DNA of 64,000 bases from Malacoraja senta (Eukaryota): NCBI GenBank assembly GCA_038087875.1, contig CM075977.1, forward strand, positions 268,150,001-268,214,000, in the 5' to 3' direction. Shown one piece after another: positions 1 to 60,222 of the stretch. Position 1 is the stretch's first letter. Each line of letters opens with the position of its first letter. The translations under genes and the position numbers were made by a program. The notes beneath the pieces are model-generated. The model searched no databases and was not told where the DNA came from. It saw only the letters and a program-made list of their open reading frames with translations.

Positions 1-74
1 AGCATGGCACATTGGGCCGAAGAGCCTGTTTCCGTGCTGTATGAATCTATGACTCTATTACTCTAACGGATGAC

Positions 75-1570
75 AATAGGTGCAGGAGTAGGCCATTCGG
101 CCCTTCGAGCCAGCACCGCCATTCAATGTGATCATGGCTGATCATCCCCAATCAGTACCCCGTTCCTGCCTTCTCCCCATATCCCCTGACTCTGCTATCT
201 TTAAGAGCCCTATCTAGCTCCCTCTTGAAAGTATCTAGAGAACCAGCCTCCACCGCCCTCTGAGGCAGAGAATTCCACAGACTCACAACTCTCTGTGTGA
301 AAAAGTGTTTCCTCATCTCCGTTCTAAATGGCTTACCCCTTATTCTTAAACTGTGGCCCCTGGTTCTGGACTCCCCCAACATCGGGAACATGTTTCCTGT
401 CTCTAGCGTGTCCAACCCCTTTATGATCTTATATGTTTCAATAAGATTCCCTCTCATCCTTCTAAATTCCAGAGTATACAAGTCCAGCCGCTCCATTCTC
501 TCAGCATATGACAGTCCCGCCATCCCGGGAATTAACCTTGTAAACCTACGCTGCAATCCCTCAATAGCAAGAATGCCCTTCCTCAAATTAGGGTACCAAA
601 ATTGCACACAATACTCCAGGTGTGGTCTCACGAGGGGCCTGTACAACTGCAGAAGGACCTCTTTGCTGCTATACATGCCATTCGCTTTCTCTACTGCCTG
701 CTGTACCTGCATGCTTACTTTCATTGACTGATGAACAAGGACCCCCAGATCCCATTGTACTTCGCCTTATCCCAATTTGACACCATTTAGATAATAATCT
801 GCCTTTCTGTTTTTGCTACCAAAGTGGATAACCTCACATTTTTCCATATTAAACTGCATGGCATTCTCCGCACAGATCACACTGCCACCCAGCTTTGTGT
901 CATCTGCAAATTTGCTAATGTTATTTTGAATCCCTTCATCTAAATCATTGATGTATATTGTAAATACCTGCGTCCTAGCACCGAGCCTTGTGGTACCCCA
1001 CTAGTCACTGCCTGCCATTCTAAAAGGGACCCGTTAATCCCTACTCTTTGTTTCCTGTGTGTCAACCAATTTTCTATCCATGTAAGCACTCTACCCCCAA
1101 TTCCATGTGCCCTAATTTTGCCCACTAATCTCCTATGTGGGAACTTATCAAATGCTTTCTGAAAGTCCAGGTACACTACATCCACTGGCCTCCCTTGTCC
1201 ATATTGCCTTTTTAGTTATCTTCTGTTGCTCTTTAAACATTACCCATTCCTCTTGCTTCCCGCTCATCTTTGCTACGTTGTACTTCTCTTTTATTTTTAT
1301 ACTGTCCCAGATGTCCCTTGTCAGCCACGGTCGCCCCTTACTCCCCTTGGAATCTTTCTTCCTCTTTGGAATGAACTGATCCTGCACCTTCTGTATTAAT
1401 CCCAGAAATACACTGCCATTGTTGTTCCACTGTCATCCATGCTAGGGTATCTTTCCAATCAACTTTGGCCAGCTCCTCCCTCATGGCTCCATAGTCCCCT
1501 TTGTTCAACTGTAACACAGACACCTCCGATTTACCCTTCTCCCTCACAAATTGTAGATTAAAACGTACCA
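75..1570 (-). mobile_element. CR1 LINE, 5'-truncated, internally deleted (RT C-terminal part and 3'UTR)
   Basis: ORFs 152-724, 940-1185 and 1148-1387 (-): [42 protein letters not shown]; CR1 3'UTR GGCCGAATGGCCTACTCCTGCACC on the minus strand near 80-100. Confidence 0.93.
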
Positions 1571-3554
1571 TATTATATGAGCTCATACCATATGAGCTCA
1601 GGGGGAGGACTGGATGTGCTGGAGTGGATGGAGGGGATGCCCTCCTCTTCACTAGCCAAGTAAGAAGTTGGTTCTTGATTAGATAGTTTCCTGCTCGGGG
1701 AACCATCAAGCACAATCCTGCATTTTGTTTACTTGCAGGGCTCTTGTGAAGTTTTGTGTAGACAACTACCTGATGGGCTTGTGACTGAGAGCTTTCTACA
1801 AGGGAAGGTAATGTGGCACAATCCAACTAAACGGAATATTCTGCAGTAAACCAGCCACATCCATTCTTCCCAACACTGGGGTGACTTGAAACCTCGGCAT
1901 AGTAATTTCCTACCTAGGACCAATATACAGCCTGATTCAACCACTCGCCATTGGCAAACTGCACTCCTCTAATTTGGGTTTACTCATAATAAATGGGACC
2001 TCTTTTATCTGGATCGCTGTGGTGCCATTTCTGTCTGCCTTCAAAGTTGTGGTGAGGATGAGAATGGCTCTTGATAATATACAGTTAGCATTTGACATCA
2101 ATCACTCCAGTCACAGTGCGGGGAAAATATTCCTTTACTAATTATTTTTGGAAGATGAAATGAGAATTCTTACAAGTGATTTTTTGTTTCCTTTTTATTT
2201 TATTTTGAAAATACAACTAAATATTTGAGATTTTCTGTTCACACAAAGAGACATGTTAATGATATCTTTGTGATTTTTGTCTCAGGCTTCTTATTTGTAC
2301 AGCAATAGAAACATCAATAAATTAACATTTCAACCATGGGGCTGCCGTTGCATGTTTGCAATAGCTGCCCCGTGAAATGAATGGTAATAAAGTCACACAC
2401 TTTATAGTTTGCCTCATTACCTTCACATCCCTTTCCTGAATATTGTACAGACTTCACCAGATCAAAATAAAATCTTTTTCACCGTTGTTTATTCCTGGAA
2501 ATAAATTATTACTGAAACAGTTTTGAGCTGAAAAAGCAGACCTGGCATACCTTTCACAATCAGCAGCCCAGATAGAAACATGCACTTTAAATTATATCTT
2601 TTTTTTCCTTTTGAAAAGATGAAACTGATGCTTTTAACACATTTGTAGTTGGAAGAAATTGCCACTGTACAACACTTTATCAGTTGTTAAGAACGCCTCA
2701 AAGCACTTTAAATCAATTGCTTTTGAGAAACAATCACTGCCGTACATATTTTCAACTGCATTTTCAGATTGGCTTAGTGAATGCTTCAGTACTTAAGGTG
2801 CTTAAAATATGAGGTAAAAACAGGTTAAGGGCAACACAATCCAAAATACAGAGACACAGACATTGCAGGTACTATTGAAACGTTTAGCAGGTACTATTGT
2901 AACATTTAAGAAGCATTTAGATAACTACATGGATAGGCTAGGTTTAGAGGGATATGGGCCAAAAGTAGGCAGGTGGTAGATATGGATGGGGCATGTGTAG
3001 TAGAGGCATGTTGCTTGGCATGGCCAGGTTGGGCCGAAGGGCCCGTTTTCATCCTGAATGACTATGACAAGAAACTGCAACGACTGGTTTATAAAAACAA
3101 GAAACAAAGTGTTGGAATAATTCAGCGGTCAGGCAGCATCTCTGGAGAACATGGATAGATGACGTTTTGGGTCTGGACGCTGATTCAGACTGATTCCATA
3201 GGTCCAAAATATACTGCTCAGAGACTATTCCACAATGTCCGGTGAATAGATATCAGAGTTACTCTGATCATTGCAATACTAACTGACATTTATCTTAATT
3301 GTCTGGAGATGACCTTGCCTCTGTATGGGGATGTTTGTGGAATTCATGAGACAACCAGGATTTTTATCTGCACAATTGGGAATGTAGTCAGTTACAACTG
3401 GAGACCTGCTAATTTCTGCCTTTGGAATTTTCTTCACTTAAATTCAGGAAGCATTTGCTAATGCACAGAGTTCAGTTCCATGGAGAATGATCTTTTGGAT
3501 CGGAGTAAAAGGATGTTGTTGCTGAAAATCTGAATCAAAAACTGGAAAACACAA

Positions 3555-3765
3555 GGAAATGCAGATGCTGGAATCTTCAGCAAAACACAAAGCACCAGAA
3601 CCATTCAAGAAGGGTCTCGACCCAAAATGTCAACCATCAGTCTGAAGAAGGGTCTCGACCCTGAAACGTCACCCATTCCTACCAGAGTTGCTGCCTGTTC
3701 TGCTGTGTTACTCCAGAATTTTGTGTCTATCTTCACCAGAACCTTCGACAGGTCAGGCAGCATCG
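3555..3765. repeat. Penelope-end-derived palindromic repeat with hammerhead-like core
   Basis: GCAGATGCTGG arm and CTGAAGAAGGGTCTCGACCCTGAAACGTC at 3642-3670; same sequence terminates the GIY-YIG fragments at 10040-10160 and 33705-33800. Confidence 0.75.
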
Positions 3766-4189
3766 GTGAAGAGAGAAACAAAGATTGGTATTTTGGGTCA
3801 AAGACTCCTTTGAACTTGAAGGCTGAGGAAATAAATGTATTAAGTTATTGAGTAGTTGAACACTGATGGGAATTGAGGGAATGTCTGTCTGTCATAGCAC
3901 ACAGAACAACATTGTCAAAGTTGCAGTCTTTGTGGTGGCTGGAAATAGAAAAGAAAAACAAGAAACAAATTTAAATGGAAAGTAACAGTCACATCTGTGG
4001 AGAGAGAAAGCAAAATGGAATGATAACCTGAAATTGTTAAATTCAATATTACGTCTTGAGGGGTCTCATGTACACAATTGAAAAATGATGTACTGTTCCT
4101 TGAGCCAATGTTGGCCAAGGTAGAAGCAGAGTAAGAGGATGAAATCAGAAGAGAATTGAAGTATAAGTGACTGGAAGTATAGGCAAAAA

Positions 4190-4395
4190 GTACAACATGT
4201 TGGAGTAATTCAGCAGGTCAGACAACATCTGTGAAGGACATTGATAGGCAACATTTTAGGTTGGGACCCTTCTCCAGTTTGAATAGGGACCTGACCCGAC
4301 CACCACCTATCCATGTCCCCCAGTGATGCTGCCAGACCCACTGAGTTACTCCAGAACGTTGTCTTTATTGCTCACGATTCCAGCATCTGCAGTGA
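4190..4395. repeat. Penelope-end-derived palindromic repeat (degenerate)
   Basis: TTGGAGTAATTCAGCAGGTCAG ... GACCCACTGAGTTACTCCAG inverted arms. Confidence 0.7.
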
Positions 4396-5029
4396 TTTGT
4401 TTTCTGGAAGCTCAGGGTTGTCATGGGGACAGAGAATACATTTTGGAAATTTGGTGAAGTAGATGAAAGGGGATCGGTGTTTGTGCTTTAAGGAAATAAG
4501 AAAGTTGTACTAGTAAGAACAAGTGTTAAGGGTCAAGAGTGTTTAATTGCCATATATATCGATAACAGAACAATAAATTGTTACTTGCACTAAATACAAT
4601 ACACAGAGACAACATATTTTAAATTCACTATTTTTTTTTAAATTCAATGAATTAATAATCGTGATACTAATGCAAAAACCCAAAGTCCGTAGTGGAACCA
4701 CAGTCCTTAGAGGTTGATAGTTACTGATAAGAGAAGACAAGAGAGATTTGCTGATGAATTTGCAGTTTTCGTTTCTCTCTGATATGCAGCAAGTTCCAAC
4801 ATATTATGATTCAATGCAATAAGAGTAACTCAAATTGATTGCTTAAAATTAGATTAATTAAACTAAATTGCAATTAAAAGTAAAATGTCACCTGAAAAAA
4901 ATTAAATTGCTCATGAATTACGACAACTGTATCAGGGCCAGTAACATATGGTGGTGTTTGCAGTGTGTGGGAACCAGTGTTGCACTGTGGCCTCATTCGT
5001 TGCAAATGTACACAGGATCTAAATTAGTT

Positions 5030-5815
5030 GGGAACTGGGCCAAAGTATGGCAAATTAAATTTAATTCTGATGAGTATGAGGTGTTGCACATTAGTGTGAC
5101 AAACCAGGGCACCACTTCTACAGTAAATGGTAGAGCCCTGGAGAGTATTGCAGAACAGAGAGACCTTTTGCATGGTTCCCTGAAAGTTTCGAGTCAGACA
5201 AAGAGTGTGATGAAGACTGCCTTTGGCACGGTTGCGTCATTGGGAAGGTTATTGAGTACAAAGGTTGGGACATCATGATGCAGCGACATAAGTTGTCGGT
5301 GAGACCACACTTGAAGTACTGTGTGCAGTTCTGCTTTCCAAGCTGCAAGAAGGTTGTCTTAAGCTGGACAGAAGAGATTCACCAGGATGTTACTTGGGCT
5401 TGCGGGCCTAAGTTATACTGAGAGGTTGAATAGGCTGGGACGTTTTTCTTTGGTGTGCAGGAGGCTGAGGAGTGACCTGATTAAGTTTTACAAGATCATG
5501 AGTGGCACGGATAAAGTGAACGCTCACAGTATTTTTCCCAGGGTCTAAGACTATAGAGCATCGGCTTAAGGTGACAAGGGGATGATTTATGAAGGATCTC
5601 TCAAAGGGTAGTCCATTTTGGCAATGAGCTGCCAGAGGAAGCTACAGAAGGAGGTGCAATTACAAATTTTAAAAGACATTTGGAGAAATAAATGGATAGG
5701 AAGAGTTTAGAGGGCTTTGGGACAGATGCAGGCAAATGGGACTGGCCAAATATGCCAACCAGATTGGCATGAATAAGATGGGTTGAAGGTTCTCCTTCCA
5801 TGCTGTAGAAATCTA
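5030..5815 (+). mobile_element. CR1 LINE 3' fragment (older subfamily)
   Basis: WAKVWQIKFNSDEYEVLH, EQRDL, VRPHLKYCVQF motifs; CR1-type 3'UTR to about 5815. Confidence 0.85.
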
Positions 5816-6184
5816 TACTTTCAATATCTGCGGTGAGGCTGCCTTCCCTCAGCAGCGACGTCCTCGCTCCACGTGTCTGTCCTCGTCCGTCGGTTGGCGC
5901 CCCCATCGACCGCCGCACTGACCTCTCCACTAACGCTGCCGGGTCCTCTCCTGAGGCCTCTGTGCCGCCGACCTGGGCCCCACTCGCGGGCTCCGTCGGC
6001 CGCGGGCTCCGACACGCGAGGTTAGGCTGCTCCAACAGACCCGCGAGGCCCTGGCTGGGCTCCGACCCGGGCTTCTCAGTGACTATCTGGGAGGGATCGA
6101 GATCGCGACGCCTCGATAAAGACCTCCAGCCACGTTCCCAGTCCACAGCCGCGACCCAGTGGGAAGCCTTCTACACTCCATATA

Positions 6185-6945
6185 CTCCTCGAGGATTCCC
6201 TTGATCCCAGCTGCCTATATTTGACATATGGCTGCTTTTCCTTGACCAGGACCTCAACAACAGAGTTCCCCACCTAACGCAGCTCTGCTCTGCACTTTAA
6301 TTGGAGCATGTGAGCCCTGAACACTCGCTATCTCACTTTTAAAAATCTCCCATTTACCCAATATTACCCAAACGGTTTCCTTCAATCAATTGTTGAAAGT
6401 TCCTGTCTAATACCATCAAAATTGACCTTGCACTAATTTAGGAGTGCAACTTTTGGTCCAGTCTTACCCTTTTAAATAACTATTTAAAGAATAATAGAAT
6501 TATGATCACTTAGTCCCAAAGGGTTCCTCTGCCAAAGGTTTGATCACCTGTCCTACCTTATTGCACAAGAGGAGATTGTGTTTTATCCCTTCTCTAGTAG
6601 GGCCTGAATGTTCCTGAACAGACTTAACAGACTCCAACCCATTCTGCCCTTAGCACAATGGTAGACAGATGGTATTAGGAAACTTAAAATATCCTCACAA
6701 TTAAAACACTATTATTCCTGCAGCCCTTTATGATTTCCCTACATTGTTCCTCCTCTAATTCCCACTGATTATTGGGGGGCCTACAGTACAATCCCATCAA
6801 ATTGATCACCCCCTTCTATCTAATTTCCAGCCTTATAGTCACAATGGACTATCCTAAGTCAAATAACAACTTCCCTTCCAATCTTTCACCCATCTCTATC
6901 CCTCCTGTCGCATTTGTATCCTGGAAGAATGAGCTGCCAGGTGCA
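6185..6945 (-). mobile_element. CR1 endonuclease/linker fragment, degraded
   Basis: Minus strand reads like the CR1 EN C-terminus (GGFPNIxW region, ASDH region) and linker EPWL-type segment (ORF 6076-6273). Confidence 0.6.
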
Positions 6946-6954
6946 ATAATCCTC

Positions 6955-7255
6955 ACAGAGTCATAGAGTGTGGAAACAGGCCCTTCGGCCCAACTTGTCA
7001 ACATGTCCAAGCTACACTAGGCCCACCTGCCTGTTTTTGGTTCATATCTCTCCAAACCAGTCCTATTCATGTACCTGTCTAACTGTTCCTTAAACATTGG
7101 GATAGTCCCAGCCTCAACTTCCTCCTCTGGCAGCTTGTTCCATATAACCACCTCCCTTTGTGTGAAAAGGTTACCCCTCAGATTCCTATTAAATCTTTTC
7201 CACTTCACCTTAAACCTATGTCCTCTGGTCCTTGATCCACCTACTCTGGGCAAGA
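6955..7255 (-). mobile_element. CR1 3' end
   Basis: ORF 7017-7253 SRTRGHRFKVK...FTQREVVIWNKLPEE plus 3' tail. Confidence 0.88.
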
Positions 7256-7257
7256 CC

Positions 7258-8385
7258 CCTGGGGAACTTTAAACTTTTCATCAATTGGTTGAATCAAATT
7301 GAAGACAAGTTTTGGAATATATATAGGATAGTGTCTTAGAATAATACATAGTGAAACCGACCAGGGATTGGGCAATTTTAGATCTGGTATTGTGCAATGA
7401 AGCAATATTGGTTAATGATCTCATAGTAAGAGATTCTCATAGTAAGAGATTCTCTTTTAGTAAATAATCAATTTTGCTTCAGAGTTGGAAACCTGGTCAG
7501 AAAGTAATCATAAAAAAGTAAAGACAACTACAAAGACGTGAAAGCCGAGTTAGCTAAAAAAGACAGGTAAAATAGTTTAAAAGGTTAATAAGTAGTGAAG
7601 CTGTAGCAGATTTAAACAGACGTCTCATAATTCTCAACAGAGATATATTCTATTGAGATTGCAAATGGAAGATGAATGAGACATCTTTAGGGAACAAAGG
7701 AAGTTAAGGTACCAAAATGAAAGAACATGTCTATGATGTTGTGAAGATTAATGATAGGACAGCAGATTGGGAACATTTTAAAAATCATCAAAGAATGACT
7801 GTAGAAAGATAAGGAGGAACAAGAAATGATGAGAGTACGCCTGCAAGAAATATAAAAACAGAGGTTTTTCAATTGTAGAACTTCTACAATGCTACTACAC
7901 TGTGAAGGGCAGAAAAGATTTATGAAGATGTTGCCAGAACATAAGAGCTGCAGCTGCAGGGAAAGGTTGTGCAGGCTTGCACTTTAATCCTTAGTGCACA
8001 GGAGGCTGAGGGATGATCTTATAGATATGTATAAAATCATGAGAGGAATAGATAGGGTGAATGCATAGAGTATTTTTCCCAGAGTTGGGGAGTCAAGAAC
8101 TAGAGGAGATAGTTTAAGGTGAATGGGGATAAATGTAATAGGAACTCGATGGGCAACTTTGTTCACACAGAGGATAGTGGGCATATGAAGCAAGCTGCCA
8201 GAGGAAGTCATTGAAGCAGGAACAATAATAACATTTAAAAATCATTTGGACAGGTTTATGAATGTGAAGGTTTAGAGGGGTATAGGCCAAACACAGATAA
8301 ATGGGACAAACTTAGATGGGGCAACTTGGTTAGCATGGCCAAGTTGGGCAGAGGGGTCTGTTTCTGTACTGTATGACCATGATTA
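7258..8385 (+). mobile_element. Old CR1 fragments (EN/linker 7258-7860; 3' end 7905-8385)
   Basis: PTRDWAILDLVLCNE-like segment near 7355-7400; RLRDDLIDMYKI and SRTRG motifs; CR1 3'UTR. Confidence 0.75.
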
Positions 8386-8579
8386 TGGCACTAATTCTAT
8401 AAAAAGGAACTCAGTAGCTGGGGTAAAGATATGCTTTGGTGCGATGAGACTGGGGAATTAATAATGGAAAACAAGGACGTAAAGAATTTGAACAAAAATT
8501 GTGTATCTGTTATCTTGATAGACCATACTGGGAACATTGCCATGAACATTAGACTGAAGGCACAATCACTGATGAAAAG

Positions 8580-8890
8580 TTTTAGATTTTAGACTTTAAA
8601 GATACAGTGTGAAAACAGGCCCTTTTGTCGACAGAGTCCACGCTGACCAGTGATCCTCATAGGCCAACACTATCCTACACACAAGGGACAACTTTACAAT
8701 TTGACCAAAGCCAATTAACGTACATACCTGTATGTATTTAGAGTGTGGAGGAATCCAGAGCACACAGAGAAAACCCACGCAGTCATATGGAGAACGTGCA
8801 AACCCCACACAGGCAGCACCCGAAGTCAGGATTGCACCTGGGTCTCCGGTGGTGTAGGACAGCAATTCTACCACTGCGCCACTGTGCCAC
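8580..8890 (-). mobile_element. HE1-like V-SINE (tRNA head, V domain, CR1 tail)
   Basis: Reverse complement of GTGGCACAGTGGCGCAGTGGTAGA...GTTTGCACGTTCTCC...GGGCCTGTTT...GTATCT. Confidence 0.85.
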
Positions 8891-9055
8891 CTAAGCATTG
8901 TGGAAAAAATGGGATTAGATGCTACCAAGTCCTGCAAACCTGCATGTGTAGGTTTTTAATGCAATGGCTGCAGAATTAGTGGATGCACTGATTGTAAACT
9001 TTTGAAATCCCCCAAATTCTGCAAAGTTTCCAGAAATGGGGAACAAAAACTGCAA

Positions 9056-9690
9056 GTACAAGGTTTCAAGGTTTCAAGGTCTCAAGGTCAGTTTATTGTC
9101 ACATGTACTAATTAAGTGAAATTCGAATTATGATACAGCCATACTAAAAAAAAAGCAACAAGACACACAACTACATAACAGTTAATATAAACATCCAGCA
9201 CAGCGTATTCCCCACGTTCCTCACTGCGATGGTCCAATCTCCTTCCTCTTTATTCTGCCGCGGTCAGGGCAGTCGAACCATCCGCAGTCGGGGTGATCGA
9301 AGCTCCCGCAGCCGTCGGTCGAAGCCCCGGGTCTGGGCCTTCGGAACTCCCGTGTCGGGGCGATCGAAATTACCAAGTCGGGGCGGTCGAAACTCCTGCA
9401 GCTTGGAGTCCCCGCTGTCTGTCTCTAACCAGAGACCACGGGCTCTGCGATATTAAAGTCCCGTAGGCTCCCACGGTTGGAGCCTCAAGGTCGACACCCA
9501 ACATGGATCGCGAACTCCGTGATGGTAAGTCCGCAGGCCCCCGCGATGGAGCTCCCCCTCGATCTCCAGCAAAGGTAGCCAACTCCACGATGTTAGGCCG
9601 CAGTGCAGACGGAGATATGATATGGAAAAACCCCCCATCTCCATCGAGGTAAGAGATTAGAACACGTTTCCCTCAACTCCCCCCACCTCC
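9056..9690 (-). mobile_element. GC-rich non-autonomous retroelement with Rex1-like 3' tail, (CCTTGAAA)n end
   Basis: Tandem AAGGTTTC repeats then TTTATTGTCA; 3' part resembles 14860-14990; interrupts an old CR1. Confidence 0.55.
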
Positions 9691-10039
9691 ACAATGGACC
9701 TATACAATAATGGAGGAGGACAGAAATGAGGAAAACTATAGCAGGGGAAAGTTGGAATCCATGATTAACTGATAGAGAACATTTGGATATTCATACAGGG
9801 TCATTCTAATTTCATGAAAGGAAGTTTATTAGAACTCTTTGAGCATGGAACAAATGGTGTGGCTAAAGGGAAAAGAGTACATTTTAATGTGTTTGATTTC
9901 CAAGTGGAATTTATTGAAGTGTCATAAGGTTGTTACACAAGATAAGAATGTTGCATAAGAGCAAATATATTAGCATGCGTAGAGGATTGAAGGAACCAAA
10001 AACAGAATTGCAATAAATGGATCATATTCAGGATATTCA

Positions 10040-10830
10040 AGAAGGAACTACAGATGCTGGAAAATCGAAGGTAGACAAAAGTGCTGGAGAAACTCAGCGG
10101 GTGCTATGGAGCGAAGGAAATAGGCAACGTTTCGGGCCGAAACCCTTCTTCAGACTGATGCAGGGTGGGGAGGGGGAGGGGGGGGGGCGGGAAGAAGAAA
10201 GGATGAGGAGGAGCCAGAGGGCTGAGGGAGAAGCAGGGAAGGGGAGGAGACGTCAAGGGCTAACGGAAATTGGAGAAGTCAATGTTCAAGCTGCTGGGGT
10301 GCAGACTGCCCAAGCGGAATTATGTGGTGCAGCTCCTCCAATTTCTGGTGGTGCTCACTCTGGACATGGAGGAGTCCCAGGACAGAAAGGTCGGATTCGG
10401 AATGGGAGGGGGAGTTGAAGTGCTGAGCCACAGGGAGATCAGGTTGGTTAATGCGGACCGAGCAGAGGTGTTCGGCGAAACGATCGCCAAGCCTACGCTT
10501 GGTCTCACCGATGTAGATCAACTGACATCTAGAACAGCGGATGCAGTAGATGAGGTTGGAGGAGATGCAGGTGAACCTCTGTCGCACCTGGAACAACTGC
10601 TTGGGTCCTTGAATGGAGTCGAGGGGGGAGGTAAAACGACAAGTGTAGCATCTCCAGCGGTTGCAAGGGAAAGTGCCCGGGGAGGGGGTGGGAAGGGTGG
10701 GAAGGGAAGAATTGACCAGGGAGTTATGGAGGGAGTGGTCTTTGCGGAAAGCAAACAGGGGGGGAGATGGGAAGATGTGGCGAGTAGTGGGGTCATGTTG
10801 GAGGTGGCGAAAATGACGGAGGACTATTTA
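10040..10830 (-). mobile_element. Penelope-like element 3' fragment (GIY-YIG endonuclease plus terminal repeat)
   Basis: ORF 10279-10596 NLIYCIRCSRCQLIYIGETKRRLGDRFAEH; upstream Cys motif; terminal repeat at 10040-10160. Confidence 0.92.
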
Positions 10831-12371
10831 TTGTATATTCAGTATGGCAAGCTGTAATTAGTAAGGTTATGGGGAGGCAGAAGGATGACATTGCCAGATC
10901 AGCTCAGCCAAGACCTTCGTGATTGGCAAGGCAGTCTCGATGGGCCACATGTACTAAACCTGCTCAAATTCTTGTGTTAATCTTTATGTAGATGGATTTT
11001 CAGCCATGGCTGGGGATGATCAGCCATAATCATATTGAATTGCAATGCTGGCTCGAAGGGCTGAGTGGCCTACTCCTGCGCCCAATGTATATTGTCTATT
11101 GTCTATTTTGGCTGCATCTCAGGTGGATTTTGATTAGCTCAAGGAACAATTTTGATTTTGAACAACTGTGTAAGAAAGGAGACTCAAGGAACTGAAGATG
11201 CGGGTTTACAAAAAAAGACACTAACTGCTCGAGTAACTCAATAATCAGGCAGAATCACTGGAGGATATGAATAGGTGATGTCTCAAGTCAGGACTCTTCT
11301 TCAGAAACCTTCTGTAAAAAGGATATGAAGAAAGAAAGAGATACATAACTGGAACCTGATTCCCAGGTGTAATTCCATGTTTCTTTGTTTAATTGATGAC
11401 TGACGCAATAGAAGGGCAGCACAGTAGATTTCCAGCAAGTATGCCTATCGCGCTATCCCTCGCCCTCACTTCTGGAAATCCAACCATTCAGCTGTGCTGC
11501 TTCCTCCTGCATACAGGCAGCTACTGAAGAGCGCACCCCCAGATGTGAGGACTGCACAGAGCAGGTCTGGGGAGGCAGAGGAACAACTATGGGACTGCTT
11601 GGAGTCAGTAGACTGGGCAATGTTGAAGGACTCGGCAACGGACCTGAATGAATTTGCCAGTCGTTACAGACTTCATAAGGAAATGTGTGGAGGACTGCGT
11701 TCCTACAAAAACCTTCAGAGTATTTCCCAACCAGAAGCCTTGGATGAACCAGGAGATCCGCATTCTTCTCTAGACCAGATCCCGGGCATTTAGATCTGAT
11801 GACGCAGAGGTCAAAAAGAGGTCCAGATAGGGAGAACACTGATGTGTCTTCCCGAGCCCCCATACACCCTTATGGTATTACAGTCACAGAGGCTGACCTC
11901 AGAAGATCCTTCTGGGGGATGAGCCCTCAGAAAGCACCTGGACCTGATGGTATACCCGGTCGAGTTCTCAAAACCTGTGCAGCCCAACTGGCTGGAGTTT
12001 TTACGGACATTTTCAACCTCTCATTATTGAGGTCTGAGATTCCCACCTGTTTTAAAAGGGCATCAATAATACCGGTGCCCAAGACTAGCAAGATTACGTG
12101 CCTCAATGACTGTCGACCAGTGGCACTAACGTCCATGATGATGAAGTGTTTTGAGAGGTTGGTTATGGTGCATATCAACTCCTACCTCGACAAGAACCTC
12201 GACCCATTACAGTTCGCCTACTGTCACAACAGGTCAATGGAGGATGCGATCTTACTGGCTCTCCACTCCGCACTGGACCACTTGGACAATAAAAACACTT
12301 ACGTAAGGCTGTTGTTTATAGACTACAGCTCGGCGTTCAATACCATCATCCCTTCCAAGCTGGTTACCAAG

Positions 12372-12934
12372 AGGTGTTCCCTGCAACTTTTTTCTCCCGG
12401 TTCACTTTTGCGGGCTGGAAGAGTCTGTGTACCATGTGTACATGGAGTGCGTGAGGCTGCAGCCCATGTTTCAATACCTAAAGGGGCTGCTCTTTGCCTT
12501 CTGGCTGCATTTTTCACCGACCATCCTCACCTCTGGACACCCTGTGCGTAGGGGAGAGGGTAGGGCTGAAGATGTTCTGGTTGGGTTGCTCCTGGGCCTG
12601 GCCAAGCTGGCCATCCGTGAGTCAAGGCACCAGGCAGTGGAGGGCTCTACCCGAACAGGCTGCCTGCCCCTTTTCCGGGGATACGTCGGTGCCCGGGTGC
12701 GGTTAGAAAGGGAATATGCCCTGTCCACGGGCACCCTGGGGATTTCCGGGACCGCTGGGCACCGAGGGGGGTTGAATGCATCCTCGACAAGGAGTGTAAT
12801 ATAGTTATATAATAGTTTATTGTTTGTCGTGTATTATTGTGGTGGGTTCTGTTTTGGTTTTTACTGTTCTGTTTATTATTTTAATATTTGAATAAATATT
12901 TTTGATTAATAATAAAAAAATAAAAATTTAAAAA
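12372..12934 (+). mobile_element. Tx1/L1-clade LINE 3' fragment, unit 1
   Basis: Partial CCHC knuckle FCGLEESVYHVYMEC, T-rich 3'UTR, AATAAA and A tail; flanked by AAGCTGGTTACCAAG at 12357 and 12935. Confidence 0.85.
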
Positions 12935-12949
12935 AAGCTGGTTACCAAG

Positions 12950-13491
12950 AGGTGTTCCCTGCAACTTGTTTCTCTCGCGGTTCACTTTTGCGGGCTGGAA
13001 GAGTCTGTGTACCACGTGTATATGGAGTGTGTGAGGCTGCAGCCACTGTTTGAATACGTAAAGGGCCTGCTCCTTGCCTTCTGGCTGCACCTCACCCACC
13101 ATCCTCATCTTTGGACACCGTGTGCGTAGGGGAGAGAGTAGGGCTGAAGATGTCCTGGTTGGGTTGCTCCTGGGCCTGGCCAAGCTGACCATCTGCGAGT
13201 CACGGCGCCAGGCGGTGGAGGGCTTTACCTGAGCCAGCTGCCTGCCCCTTTTCCGGGGATACGTCCGTGCCCGGGTGGGGTTAGGAAGGGAATACGCCCT
13301 GTCCACGGGAGTTCCGGGACCGCTGGGCTCCGCAGGGTGTTGAATGCATCCTTGACAAGGAGTGTAAGATAATTGTACAGTAGTTTATTAAGGATATTTG
13401 TTTGTATTGTATTATGGTGGTGGGTTCTGGTTTGTTTTATTGTAGTTTAATATTATTTTTTAAATAATTGAATACATTTTTTGAATAAAAA
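12950..13491 (+). mobile_element. Tx1/L1-clade LINE 3' fragment, unit 2
   Basis: Same 5' junction and internal deletion as unit 1; flanked by the 15-mer at 12935 and 13492. Confidence 0.85.
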
Positions 13492-13506
13492 AAGCTGGTT
13501 ACCAAG

Positions 13507-14028
13507 GGGCCCCCCAGTGCGGGTCCCTCTACGCAGGGATTCTCCCCCTCTACATCGGGGACTTGGGGTGGAGGGTACTCCACCGTGGAGTCTCTTGCAA
13601 CCTGTTTCTCTCGCAGTTTACAGACTCACCAGCCACCTGCCACTTTTGCGGGCTGGAAGAGTCTGTGTACCACATGTATATGGAGTGTGTGAGGCTGCAG
13701 TCCCTGTTCCATTATCTAAAGGGGCTGCTCCTTTAGATAATGGCTCCTTTTGATACACCACCTGGGCATGGACCTAACCCTGGCTGCCTGCCCCTTTTCC
13801 ATGCCCGGGTGGTGTTAGAGAGGGACTGCTCGCTGTCCACGGGCACCCTGGGGGATTTCCAGGACCGCTGGGCACCGCGTGGGGTTGAATGCATCCTTGA
13901 CATGGAGTGTGAGATAGTTGTATAAAATTTTATCGTTTGCCATGTATTATGGTGTTGGGTTCTGTTTCGTTTTATTGTCTTGTAAATATTATTTTAATAT
14001 TTGAATTAATGTTTTTGAATTTTTTTAA
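13507..14028 (+). mobile_element. Tx1/L1-clade LINE 3' fragment, unit 3
   Basis: Complete CHFC-x7-H-x4-C knuckle; different 5' end and deletions; flanked by the 15-mer at 13492 and 14029. Confidence 0.85.
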
Positions 14029-14154
14029 AAGCTGGTTACCAAGCTCACGGAACTGGGTCTCTGCGCATCCCTCTGCAATTGGATCCCGGACTTCCTCATC
14101 CACAGACCACTGTCTGTTCGAATTGGCAGAAATACTGTACTTCTTCCTCATTAA

Positions 14155-15013
14155 TTGGGTGGGCGGCACGACTCACGTTGCAGCGGCCTCTGCAGTCCGT
14201 CTGTCTTTTTTTTTTTTTTTTTGAGTTTGAGTTTTGTATAGTGTTTTTTTTTTTAACTGGTTATGTGTGGGGGGGGCGGGGGGCGTGAGGTGGGGGTGGG
14301 GAAACTTTTAAAATCTTTTCCCTGCACGGGAGACCCGACCTTTCTCTGTCAGGTCTCCGTTGTCGTTGGGGCCTAGCACCGTGGAGCGGCCTCCAACCGG
14401 AACGACCTGGGGCTCCAGTCGCGGAGCCTGCGGACTACTCACCATCGTGGAGCTGGCCGAGTTCGGAGCGGGAGGAGCTGTGGTGGCACGCTGCTGCTAC
14501 CCGACCCCGGAGATTCGGAGGCTTCAGCCGCAGGTCTGGTGGATGGTAACATCGGGAGCTCGCGGGTCAATGGTGGGAGACCGCTTTTCGGGGCTCCCGC
14601 AACAGCAGCTACTCCCGCCGAGTTGCGGGGTTGAGGATGACCTGGAGCGGGGTCTGACATCGCCCGGCGCGGCATTGGTGGCCGTGGGACTTGCTGGCGC
14701 TACTGGGGGCTACAACATCAAGACCCGGAGCGTGGCCTTGCATCGCCCGGCGCGGCTTAATGGCCGCGGGACATATCTACAATCGCCCGCCGGGGCCTTT
14801 GACTTTGACATCGGGAGGAGAATGTGGAGTGCAGGGGAGAGATAAGACTTTGCCTTCCATCACAGTGAGGAGGAGATTCACTGTGATGGATGTTTGTGTA
14901 AATTGTGTTGTGTCTTGGTTCTTTTTACTTGTTTGTATGACTGCAGAAACCAAATTTCGTTTGAACTTAGGTTCAAATGACAACAAATAAATATCTAATA
15001 AAAAAAATATCTA
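14155..15013 (+). mobile_element. GC-rich non-autonomous retroelement with Rex1-like tail
   Basis: Interrupts Rex1 RT with ATTAA duplicated (14150-14154 / 15014-15018); ends AAATTTCGTTTG...AATGACAACAAATAAA. Confidence 0.7.
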
Positions 15014-16044
15014 ATTAACAATCAGTACAGGAACACCTCAAGGCTGTGTGCTCAACCCCCTGCTGTACTCACTCTATACTCATGACTGTGTAGCCGGACA
15101 CAGTGCGAACACCATCTTCAAGTTCACCGACGACACCACCGCCGTTGGACGAATTACAGATGTTGATGAGTAAGAGTATAGAAGTGAGATCAAGTGAGAT
15201 CAACCGATTGACCAAATGGTTGCCAGCACAACAATCTGGCTCTCAATATCAGTAAAACCCCAAAGACGTACAGGTTTGTAGGTTAATTGGCTTGATGTAA
15301 GTGTAAATTGTCCCAAGTGTGGGTAGGATAGTGCTAATGTGCAGGGATCGCTGTTTGGTGCGGACCTGGGTGGCCGAAGGGCCTGTATCTCTAAACTTAT
15401 CTAAAAGGCATTATCCACGTGGAATGGTTGTGCACGTTGGATGTATTGTTATGAATGGATGAGGGCTGAGTCTGATTACATCCACATAAGTAAACGTTGG
15501 TGAGAACCTACCAACATACTGCTTATAAGTCTGCCTGCCCACCATAAATTCTGCAGGTTGGCAGGAAGGAAATGCAGGAAACATTTTCCATTCATTGCAA
15601 CTTTCTGTTTGAATCTAATTTCTAACCAGGCACTCAAGGTATTTGCTGGAATTCGCCAGGATCTTCTTTTAGATATTCAGATTGAGGTCCAATCCTAATA
15701 TTAATGACTGCTGTTTCAAGTATAGGGTGCAGGTGGGTAATACTTACATTGAGTGATTTAATTCAAGATGCAACTCATTTAAGAGCATATCAAATATTGT
15801 TCTTCTCAGCCTCCAATAAGAAACACTGAATATTCTCAATGCTGAAATTTAAGGGGTAATTTTGTCATGAGTTTCAGCTGGCTTCCCAATGTCCTATAAA
15901 CATTGCCATCTTTAAGCCTGCCATATGTACTCTTCATAAACCCAGGCCTCCCCCACATTAACATGGAGATTGGAGTATTCTAATCTGTGATATTGGAAAT
16001 ATTATGCTGGTGATCAAGCAAACATCAACAGATCAACACCTATT

Positions 16045-16420
16045 AGGTAGACACAAAATGCTGGAATAACTCAGCGGGACAGGCAGCATCTCTGGAGAGA
16101 AGGAATGGGTGACGTTTCGGGTCAAGACCCTTCCTCGTCGGAGAGAGGAGGAGAACTTCTTCAAAGTAGACATACTCTGAGGAGATTTCACAGTGGAGTG
16201 GACAATGTGTGTAGGAAAGAACAGCAAATGCTGGTTTAAATCAAAGGTTAACACAAAATGCTGGAGTAACTCAGCGGGACAGGCAGCATCACTGGAAAGG
16301 TCGCGACCTGAAACGTTACCCATTCCTTCTCTCAAGAGATGCTGCCTGTCCCACTGAGTTACTCCAGCATTTTGTGTCTACCTTCGATTTTAACCAGCAT
16401 CTGCAGTTCTTTCCTACACC
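16045..16420. repeat. Nested Penelope-end palindromic elements
   Basis: Two forward arms ACACAAAATGCTGGA(G/A)TAACTCAGCGGGACAGGCAGCATC and one reverse arm at 16320-16420. Confidence 0.8.
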
Positions 16421-16559
16421 TATCAACATCTACAGTATTAGTAGTTCAGTCTAGATTCCGCTGTGTCATTTGCAGAAGCAAATAAGATATATTGCTGTCA
16501 ACAGAATTTCCTTTATTTAAGGCATTAACTCTTAACTAAATCTAGCCACATCATGCAAT

Positions 16560-59055: not shown

Positions 59056-59129
59056 CAGAGACCTAAACCACCAAATTCTACCTTGGTTACAGCCCTCAAG
59101 AGCCTTTCTGTGCAAATCCCACCATACAT

Positions 59130-60222
59130 ATTTGTTTGTTGATTTTAGCTCTGCTTCAACACCATTATGCCAGAGCTACTACACTCCAAACTTTCCAAGT
59201 TAACTGTGCCTGAACCCCTCTGTCGGTGGATCACCAGCTTCCTGACAGACAGGAAGCAGCATGCGAGGTTGGGAAAGCACATCTCGGACCCGCAGACTCT
59301 CAGCATAGGAGCACCGCAAGACTGCGTACTCTCCCGTCCTCTACTCTCTGTAAACCAACGACTGCACCTCCACTGACTCCTCTGTCAACTTCTCAAGTTT
59401 GCGGATGACACAACCCTGATTGGACTGATCCAGGATGGGGAGGAATCTGCCTACAGACAGGAAGTGACACAGCTGGCGTCCTGGTGCCATTGCAACAAGC
59501 TAGACCTTAATGCTCTTAAGACAGTGGAATTGATTGTAGTCTTTAGGAGTGCTCCCCCTCCCCTCCCCCCACTCAACATCCTTGGCCCCCCATTTCTCCA
59601 ATGACCTTAAATGGGGGGCCACCATCGACTCCACAGTCAAAAAGGCACAACAGAGGAAGAACTTCCTGTGGCAGCTGAGGGAGCACAACCTACCACGGGC
59701 AATGATGGACCAATTCTATACGGCCATTGTAGAGTCTGTTCTCACCTTCTCCATCATGGTCTGGTTTGGCTCAGCCACCAAGCACGACATCCGGAGGCTG
59801 CAGCGAATCATCCGATCAGCTGAGAAGGTTATTGGCTGCAACCTTCCCTCCATTGACGAACTGTACACTGCAAGGGCCAGGAAGCAAGCGGGTAAGATCA
59901 TCTCTGACCCCTCTCACCCTGGCCACAAACTCTTTGAATCACTTCCCTCTGGAAGATGACTCAGCTGGAAGCTGCCACAGCCTGACATAAAAACAACTTT
60001 TTCCCATGAGTAATAGTTCTAGTCAATAACCAAAAATCTGTAGCCTCCATTTGCTCTGGTATTTTATTTAATTCACATGTTTAATCGATAATGTTTTATT
60101 TTTAATGTTTAATGTTTTATGTGTCATTCCTAACAGTCGCTGTATGTCATGTTGTCACTTATGGGCGGAGCACCAAGGCAAATTCCTTGTATGTGACTAC
60201 TTGGCCAATAAACGTATTCATA
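59130..60222 (+). mobile_element. Rex1/Babar LINE, 5'-truncated
   Basis: FVDFSSA, GAPQDCVLS, KFADDT, FYTAIVESVLTFSIMVWFG, LPSGR; same subfamily as 22212-22965. Confidence 0.9.

Follow-up and report, generated by a model that had tools for sequence, protein, structure and literature searches.

Stacked 3' ends of a Tx1-type LINE at a single site in the reverse transcriptase sequence of a Rex1-like LINE of Malacoraja senta

Introduction

How does one short site within the coding sequence of a LINE come to hold three tails of another LINE family, all pointing the same way, and does the stack record a preference of the incoming element for that site? The question is posed by a 64-kb stretch of the Malacoraja senta genome (the window, below), in which the tails interrupt the reverse transcriptase (RT) sequence of a Rex1-like element. 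Among APE-type retrotransposons, those that home in on fixed sequences belong mainly to the Tx1 clade of LINEs. The best-supported reading of the locus, held here with moderate confidence, is that a sequence-preferring Tx1-type LINE struck one Rex1 site repeatedly. A preference of the whole family for a Rex1/Babar coding motif is not established.

The host element and the anatomy of the stack

The host is a Rex1-like LINE extending from ~11480 to ~15265 of the window on the + strand. Its left arm, which is 5'-truncated and comprises the pre-RT sequence and the first part of the RT, lies at 11480-12371 (delimited by translation, with an approximate 5' limit); within it, the ORF at 11799-12371 matches positions 2-87 of the Pfam family RVT_1. 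The next part of the RT is found by translation at 14044-14137, and the last part, which begins ISTGTPQGCVLNPLLYSLYTHDC, at 15016-15265 (RVT_1 positions 115-159); the copy breaks off near 15265. When 12371 is joined to 14044, the Rex1-like RT frame stays open across the junction. The RVT_1 matches on both arms and the restored frame therefore place the insertion site inside the RT domain of a 5'-truncated Rex1-like LINE, and they bear out a preliminary description of the window according to which removal of the three intervening units restores the Rex1 RT. A teleost RT fragment carrying RVT_1 and ALKBH8_N shows 67-73% identity to the right arm. The Rex1/Babar-type name comes from recognition of the motifs FIDYSSAFNTI and GTPQGCVLxPLLY, and the host is best called Rex1-like.

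The same RT carries a second, unrelated insertion at 14138-15015 (+ strand), a non-coding, GC-rich retroposon whose tail is rich in A/T and holds a 16-bp repeat (14985-15015); T runs occur near its 5' part. Its core is very abundant from ~14340 onward, where depth jumps to 10^5 in four skate runs.

The stack itself is punctuated by the 15-mer AAGCTGGTTACCAAG, which occurs four times unchanged on the + strand, just as the preliminary description had it. The first target copy (T0, 12357-12371) supplies the Rex1 RT codons K-L-V-T-K in the context CCCTTCC^AAGC...; the second (T1, 12935-12949) and third (T2, 13492-13506) match it exactly, and the fourth (T3, 14029-14043) runs on into the right arm of Rex1 (...CCAAG^CTCACGG). 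The 64-kb window holds no fifth match, even at up to two mismatches, and none of 100 shuffled windows reached four matches. Between the 15-mers lie three units in the same orientation, of 563, 542 and 522 bp. The presence of stacked LINE tails within a Rex1 RT is thus confirmed. Tandem insertions of one orientation around a target-site duplication (TSD) of ~12-16 bp are a Tx1 trait, and they are what is found here, with three units and four exact 15-mers. The duplication itself is put at 13-15 bp, because the first two A's of the 15-mer blend into the A tails of the units.

All three units (+ strand) are built alike: the end of an ORF2 is followed by a T-rich UTR of ~130 bp and a short A run. 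Unit 1 (12372-12934, 563 bp) is a 5'-truncated Tx1-type LINE 3' end that joins its target as CCAAG|AGGTGTTCC; the C-terminus of its ORF2, with one late frameshift, occupies ~12373-12801, and its tail is an A-rich composite. Unit 2 (12950-13491, 542 bp) is its sister: both begin at the same point of the LINE and have one 22-bp deletion in common, their identity is 84% (gaps included), and unit 2 has an A7 tail. Unit 3 (13507-14028, 522 bp; A4 tail) reaches ~80 bp further into the LINE on its 5' side than units 1 and 2 do and has two internal deletions, of ~130 bp together, so that the distinctness originally ascribed to it in 5' end and deletions stands. The description of every unit as a Tx1/L1-like 3' end with CCHC knuckle, T-rich UTR and A tail needs to be narrowed: UTR and tail are present in all three, but the CX2CX7HX4C motif is complete only in unit 3, its first Cys having been lost from units 1 and 2 through their common 22-bp deletion. 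Searches of the window with blastn and tblastn disclosed no further copies of the LINE family, nor was a full-length member found within it.

The LINE's own coding sequence contains, at 12602-12610 of unit 1 (the GLAKLAI region), the nonamer CCAAGCTGG. The same nine bases stand at 12355-12363, forming the left half of the Rex1 target with the inferred nick included. The site in unit 1 is unoccupied.

Affinity of the LINE family

The units appear to be 5'-truncated 3' ends of one Tx1-like LINE family, an assignment supported by comparison of their translations with known proteins. The unit protein is collinear with residues 1036-1143 of a 1173-aa catfish protein (P0242; E 9e-15) that bears the name 'transposon TX1 149 kDa' by automatic annotation. 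Compared with proteins from elsewhere, the units reach no more than 68% amino acid identity (unit 1 with P0001), and a short C-terminal query gave no candidate. The units hold only the C-terminal domain; a 68%-identical relative with APE and RT domains resides on contig L001, where the full-length element, which ends in a long poly(A), has a 766-aa ORF1 and combines an APE endonuclease and an RT with the C-terminal domain seen in the units. The ORF2 of this relative scores 537 bits against P0242 (40% identity over 89% of the length) and 217 bits against human L1 ORF2p. When a profile of the C-terminal domain (A2) was compared with all PDB chains, human L1 ORF2p included, nothing matched at E up to 10 save one chain by chance; the close C-terminal similarity that would mark the L1 clade proper thus seems not to be there. 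It is because of the similarity scores and the collinearity with a Tx1-named protein that the family is labelled Tx1-type.

The relative on L001 (positions 1-12190 of an 18-kb contig of ENA assembly ERZ25070917) forms a head-to-tail array of full-length elements with a period of 6699 bp and 96.6% identity between copies. A poly(A) of ~35 A closes each copy, and ~530 bp follow before ORF1; the contig shows neither the target of the array nor its borders.

A candidate fusion of a Tx1 C-terminus with a Rex1 RT (P0080) was rejected, its gene model joining two fragments 3.6 kb apart. The record (KAI4884328.1; L006:2780-9680, Prochilodus magdalenae, GCA_024036415.1) is a chimaeric model in which a Tx1-like ORF2 is spliced to a Rex1-like RT fragment 3.6 kb downstream.

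The site in other runs and databases

Logan contigs of four skate runs, from four organisms, were aligned to 12000-14400 of the window, with the A-rich 3' junction at 12899-12938 left out. In all four runs the summed depth is ~10^5 on the Rex1 flanks and 10^3 to 10^5 on the units, and on this ground the LINE family is taken to be multi-copy in several species. Rex1 sites that retain the 15-mer and lack an insertion are frequent: contigs passing from 12356 directly to 14029, with the 15 bases shared, number at least 4-10 per run among the matches listed, and this frequency argues for low occupancy of the Rex1 site. Sequence from upstream in Rex1 is also found on many loose contig ends at 14029.

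One contig of run X5 carries a further Rex1/LINE junction near the site of the window. Its Rex1 sequence (to 12367) is followed by 12 unaligned bases and then by the LINE from 13590, with at least 79 bases on each side, and the truncation point is unlike those of all three units. Joints of 12369 to 13094 in two runs were not counted, since they span only 22-25 bases on one side, and their likeness to Rex1 is one of low-complexity sequence. No protein record was found for the junction ORF of the window, DNA and protein scans of the JGI metagenomes and IMG/VR gave no matches, and 11000-16500 contains no Rfam families.

Within the window, no other Rex1 copy has the 15-mer. At 59120-59340 there is a Rex1/Babar-like RT fragment of another subfamily (VDFSSAFNTIMPELLHSKLSKL...), which shares 43% amino acid identity with the host over 42 residues. 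This copy had been cited, at 59130, as lacking both the 15-mer and an insertion. The absence is real, but the copy does not serve as a control: because it belongs to a distant Rex1-like subfamily, its empty state says little.

Number and history of the insertions

Four relatives served as outgroup to polarise the history of the units. Units 1 and 2 have 13 derived sites in common, where the other pairs have 3-4. The share of private changes is 3.5% in unit 1, 5% in unit 2 and 8.7% in unit 3, and root-to-tip distances are similar across the three (8-9%). In non-CpG divergence, units 1 and 2 stand 11.8% apart, and each differs from unit 3 by ~19%. Many of the differing bases are private to the window copies when set against nearly all family contigs of the four skate runs.

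Because units 1 and 2 share their 5' end, the 22-bp deletion and the 13 derived sites, both are derived from one defective truncated copy, and local tandem duplication is probably the simplest origin of the pair. Unit 3 is assigned to a separate insertion because the conversion of a unit-3-like into a unit-1-like sequence would need a deletion stopping exactly at the 15-mer. At least two independent insertions at one staggered cut make up the most economical history, and this is the best reading of the stack. The earlier proposal of two or more independent hits on the same nucleotide is accordingly upheld by the ~80-bp difference in 5' ends; its count of three insertions is not, and is probably to be replaced by two insertions and one local duplication, units 1 and 2 having their 5' end and deletion in common.

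The first LINE base of unit 3 is also the point at which truncated copies of a related family start in two other runs (L003 and L004), and their flank at the 5' junction ends in AAG(C), as it does at unit 3. The coincidence points to 5' joining by microhomology at the start point of unit 3. At L003:560-620 and L004:600-660, which come from different runs, the 5' junction reads identically as ...CATAAACTAAGC|GGTCCCCAGTGG; AAG/GAGC is suggested to be a favoured microhomology for 5' joining in this LINE group.

The stack might alternatively have grown from one insertion amplified in place: unequal exchange or replication slippage between copies of the target duplication, and then between units, would have multiplied it, and a later deletion would have trimmed 80 bp from the 5' side of the ancestor of units 1 and 2. 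The common features of units 1 and 2 (identical 5' ends, 22-bp deletion, 13 derived sites) and the even root-to-tip distances are as this history would have them, and a relative on contig L002, described below, offers a case of LINE-plus-flank composites amplified as tandem repeats. We nonetheless hold it to be rather unlikely: the 5' deletion must end exactly at the 15-mer, the tails are unlike in length and make-up, and at the observed divergence of the units the probability that all four 15-mers stayed unchanged is ~0.003-0.006.

That probability applies to every history that gives the units the age of their divergence and has them decay neutrally in place; if the duplication of units 1 and 2 alone is old, the probability that the 60 bases of the 15-mers remain unchanged is 0.06-0.08. 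Private changes in the units beside none in the 15-mers are thus awkward for any history in which the changes arose in place. There is a hint that part of the divergence is older than the insertion, in that units 1 and 2 differ by 23% in the UTR and by 10% in the coding part (counted from the list of differing positions) and in that there is a weak excess of synonymous differences between units. The synonymous excess (P ~0.04 per pair) was set aside as too weak, and as opposed by the frame-breaking deletion common to units 1 and 2, which argues against divergence built up before insertion. Recent copying from old dead copies would reconcile these data, speculatively.

One form of such copying would make the units recent, trans-mobilised copies of dead truncated copies in other Rex1 elements, produced by way of Rex1 read-through RNA, with the Rex1 sequence guiding 5' joining and so re-creating the 5' end. 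Perfect 15-mers beside decayed units would then be explained, as would the 5' end common to units 1 and 2, and co-transcription of the target has been discussed for Tx1-mobilised SINEU (PMC4494074). Direct evidence for this route is lacking, however, LINE proteins usually prefer their own RNA, and no second copy with the unit-1 junction appears among the contigs listed; we judge the route extremely doubtful. Its extension, a skate Tx1 lineage with the Rex1 RT motif as its home site, whose dead copies would spread from Rex1 to Rex1 through read-through RNA while Rex1 sequence guides both ends of integration, is highly doubtful. If true, it would describe a LINE parasitic on the copies and the transcription of another LINE.

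Choice of site and a proposed mechanism

On the top strand the occupied site reads CCCTTCC^AAGCTGGTTACCAAG^CTCACGG, the carets marking the inferred nicks of the bottom and top strands. A related family on contig L002, from another organism, provides a comparison: a 5'-truncated copy lies there between the two copies of a duplicated 16-mer, AGGGTTAATCAGCAAG, whose surroundings read CACTTCC^AGGG...GCAAG^GAGAG. Both families have CTTCC^A at the left nick and CAAG^ at the right one; the sequence between differs, and L002 does not have the 15-mer. From these two families, and noticed after the fact, it would seem that the endonuclease may read two short nick contexts 15-16 bp apart, which Rex1 bears by chance. 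The pattern CTTCCA-N9-11-CAAG has one site in the 64 kb, the occupied one, against ~0.66 expected by chance; the window was picked for the site, so the match is not independent support. None of the relatives' contigs (L001-L005), which represent other families with other flanks, carries the 15-mer.

The LINE of L002 has also been amplified together with its surroundings. At L002:3170-7070, three LINE 3' parts with ~640 bp of flank constitute a 1511-bp tandem repeat whose copies are 93-98% identical; the first copy bears the 16-bp TSD, and the LINE-plus-target composite forms a satellite-like array.

Repeated hits by a sequence-preferring element could have proceeded as follows; where the strands are nicked, what sequence the enzyme prefers, and how many events occurred in what order are inferred. 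Two or more times, a Tx1-type LINE family would have made its staggered cut at one and the same place in the Rex1 copy. The family's endonuclease would nick the bottom strand at CTT^GGAAG (top strand CTTCC^AAG), and the top strand would be nicked 15 bp downstream, after CCAAG. Each round of target-primed reverse transcription would leave a 5'-truncated copy and duplicate the 13-15 bp between the nicks, and the duplication would restore a target open to another hit. Separate insertions would account for unit 3 and for the ancestor of units 1 and 2, units 1 and 2 themselves most likely arising afterwards by local tandem duplication.

A local hot spot, with no specificity of the family as a whole, might also stack tails. 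A first copy would have landed by chance in the manner of L1; a later one would have been primed within the T stretch facing the A tail already present, a kind of site that L1-type elements favour, and its second nick would have fallen where the earlier one did. The leading AA of the 15-mer merges with the A tails, so that a nick within a tail would be invisible, and the copy number of the family is high, as for a dispersed LINE. The top-strand nick would have to recur on the same base, however, and both nick contexts are present in the related family; there is, besides, the further Rex1/LINE junction near the site in run X5, and kinship with the Tx1 clade makes a true sequence preference the default expectation (PMC4494074). 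We regard the local hot spot as a decidedly improbable course.

Comparison with known Tx1 systems

A family with its preferred site in the coding sequence of another LINE would bring a new target class to the Tx1 clade. The families of the window and of L002 would then also offer two related endonucleases that nick in similar contexts (CTTCC^A ... CAAG^), a pair made by nature on which to study DNA reading by APE-type enzymes. No description of a Tx1 family with a non-LTR (Rex1) target was found in the literature searched.

The targets known for the Tx1 clade are U2 and other small RNA genes, microsatellites, DNA transposons of the piggyBac, Mariner and Harbinger types, and LTR retrotransposons (Kojima 2015, PMC4494074). 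A family is there counted as specific when one kind of sequence makes up >20% of its flanks, and one insertion after another is the explanation given for tandem SINEU-3 copies 'sandwiching a TSD' of 16 bp (PMC4494074). The statement of the preliminary description that Tx1-clade families are site-specific and can form tandem arrays agrees with these published tandem insertions around a TSD. The present locus is one clean case that fits the known behaviour of the clade.

The founding Tx1 LINE, Tx1L of Xenopus laevis, which lies in the piggyBac-type element Tx1D, resembles the skate stack in residing inside another mobile element (as cited in PMC4494074); its target is of another class, and the stack consists of 5'-truncated tails only. 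Tx1-8_Crp and Tx1-4_AMi are likewise Tx1 families that prefer other retrotransposons, but their targets are LTR retrotransposons (PMC4494074). The likeness to the crocodilian Tx1-Mar LINEs and SINEU-3 lies in the Tx1-type affinity, in the use of a single position within a different transposon (Mariner-N4_AMi), in the TSD (16 bp in their case) and in the tandem copies (PMC4494074). Their target, however, is a DNA transposon, whereas here it is the coding region of a LINE; and their specificity was established by a census of flanks, in which 90% of SINEU-3 copies occupy the site (PMC4494074), whereas the skate stack is one locus.
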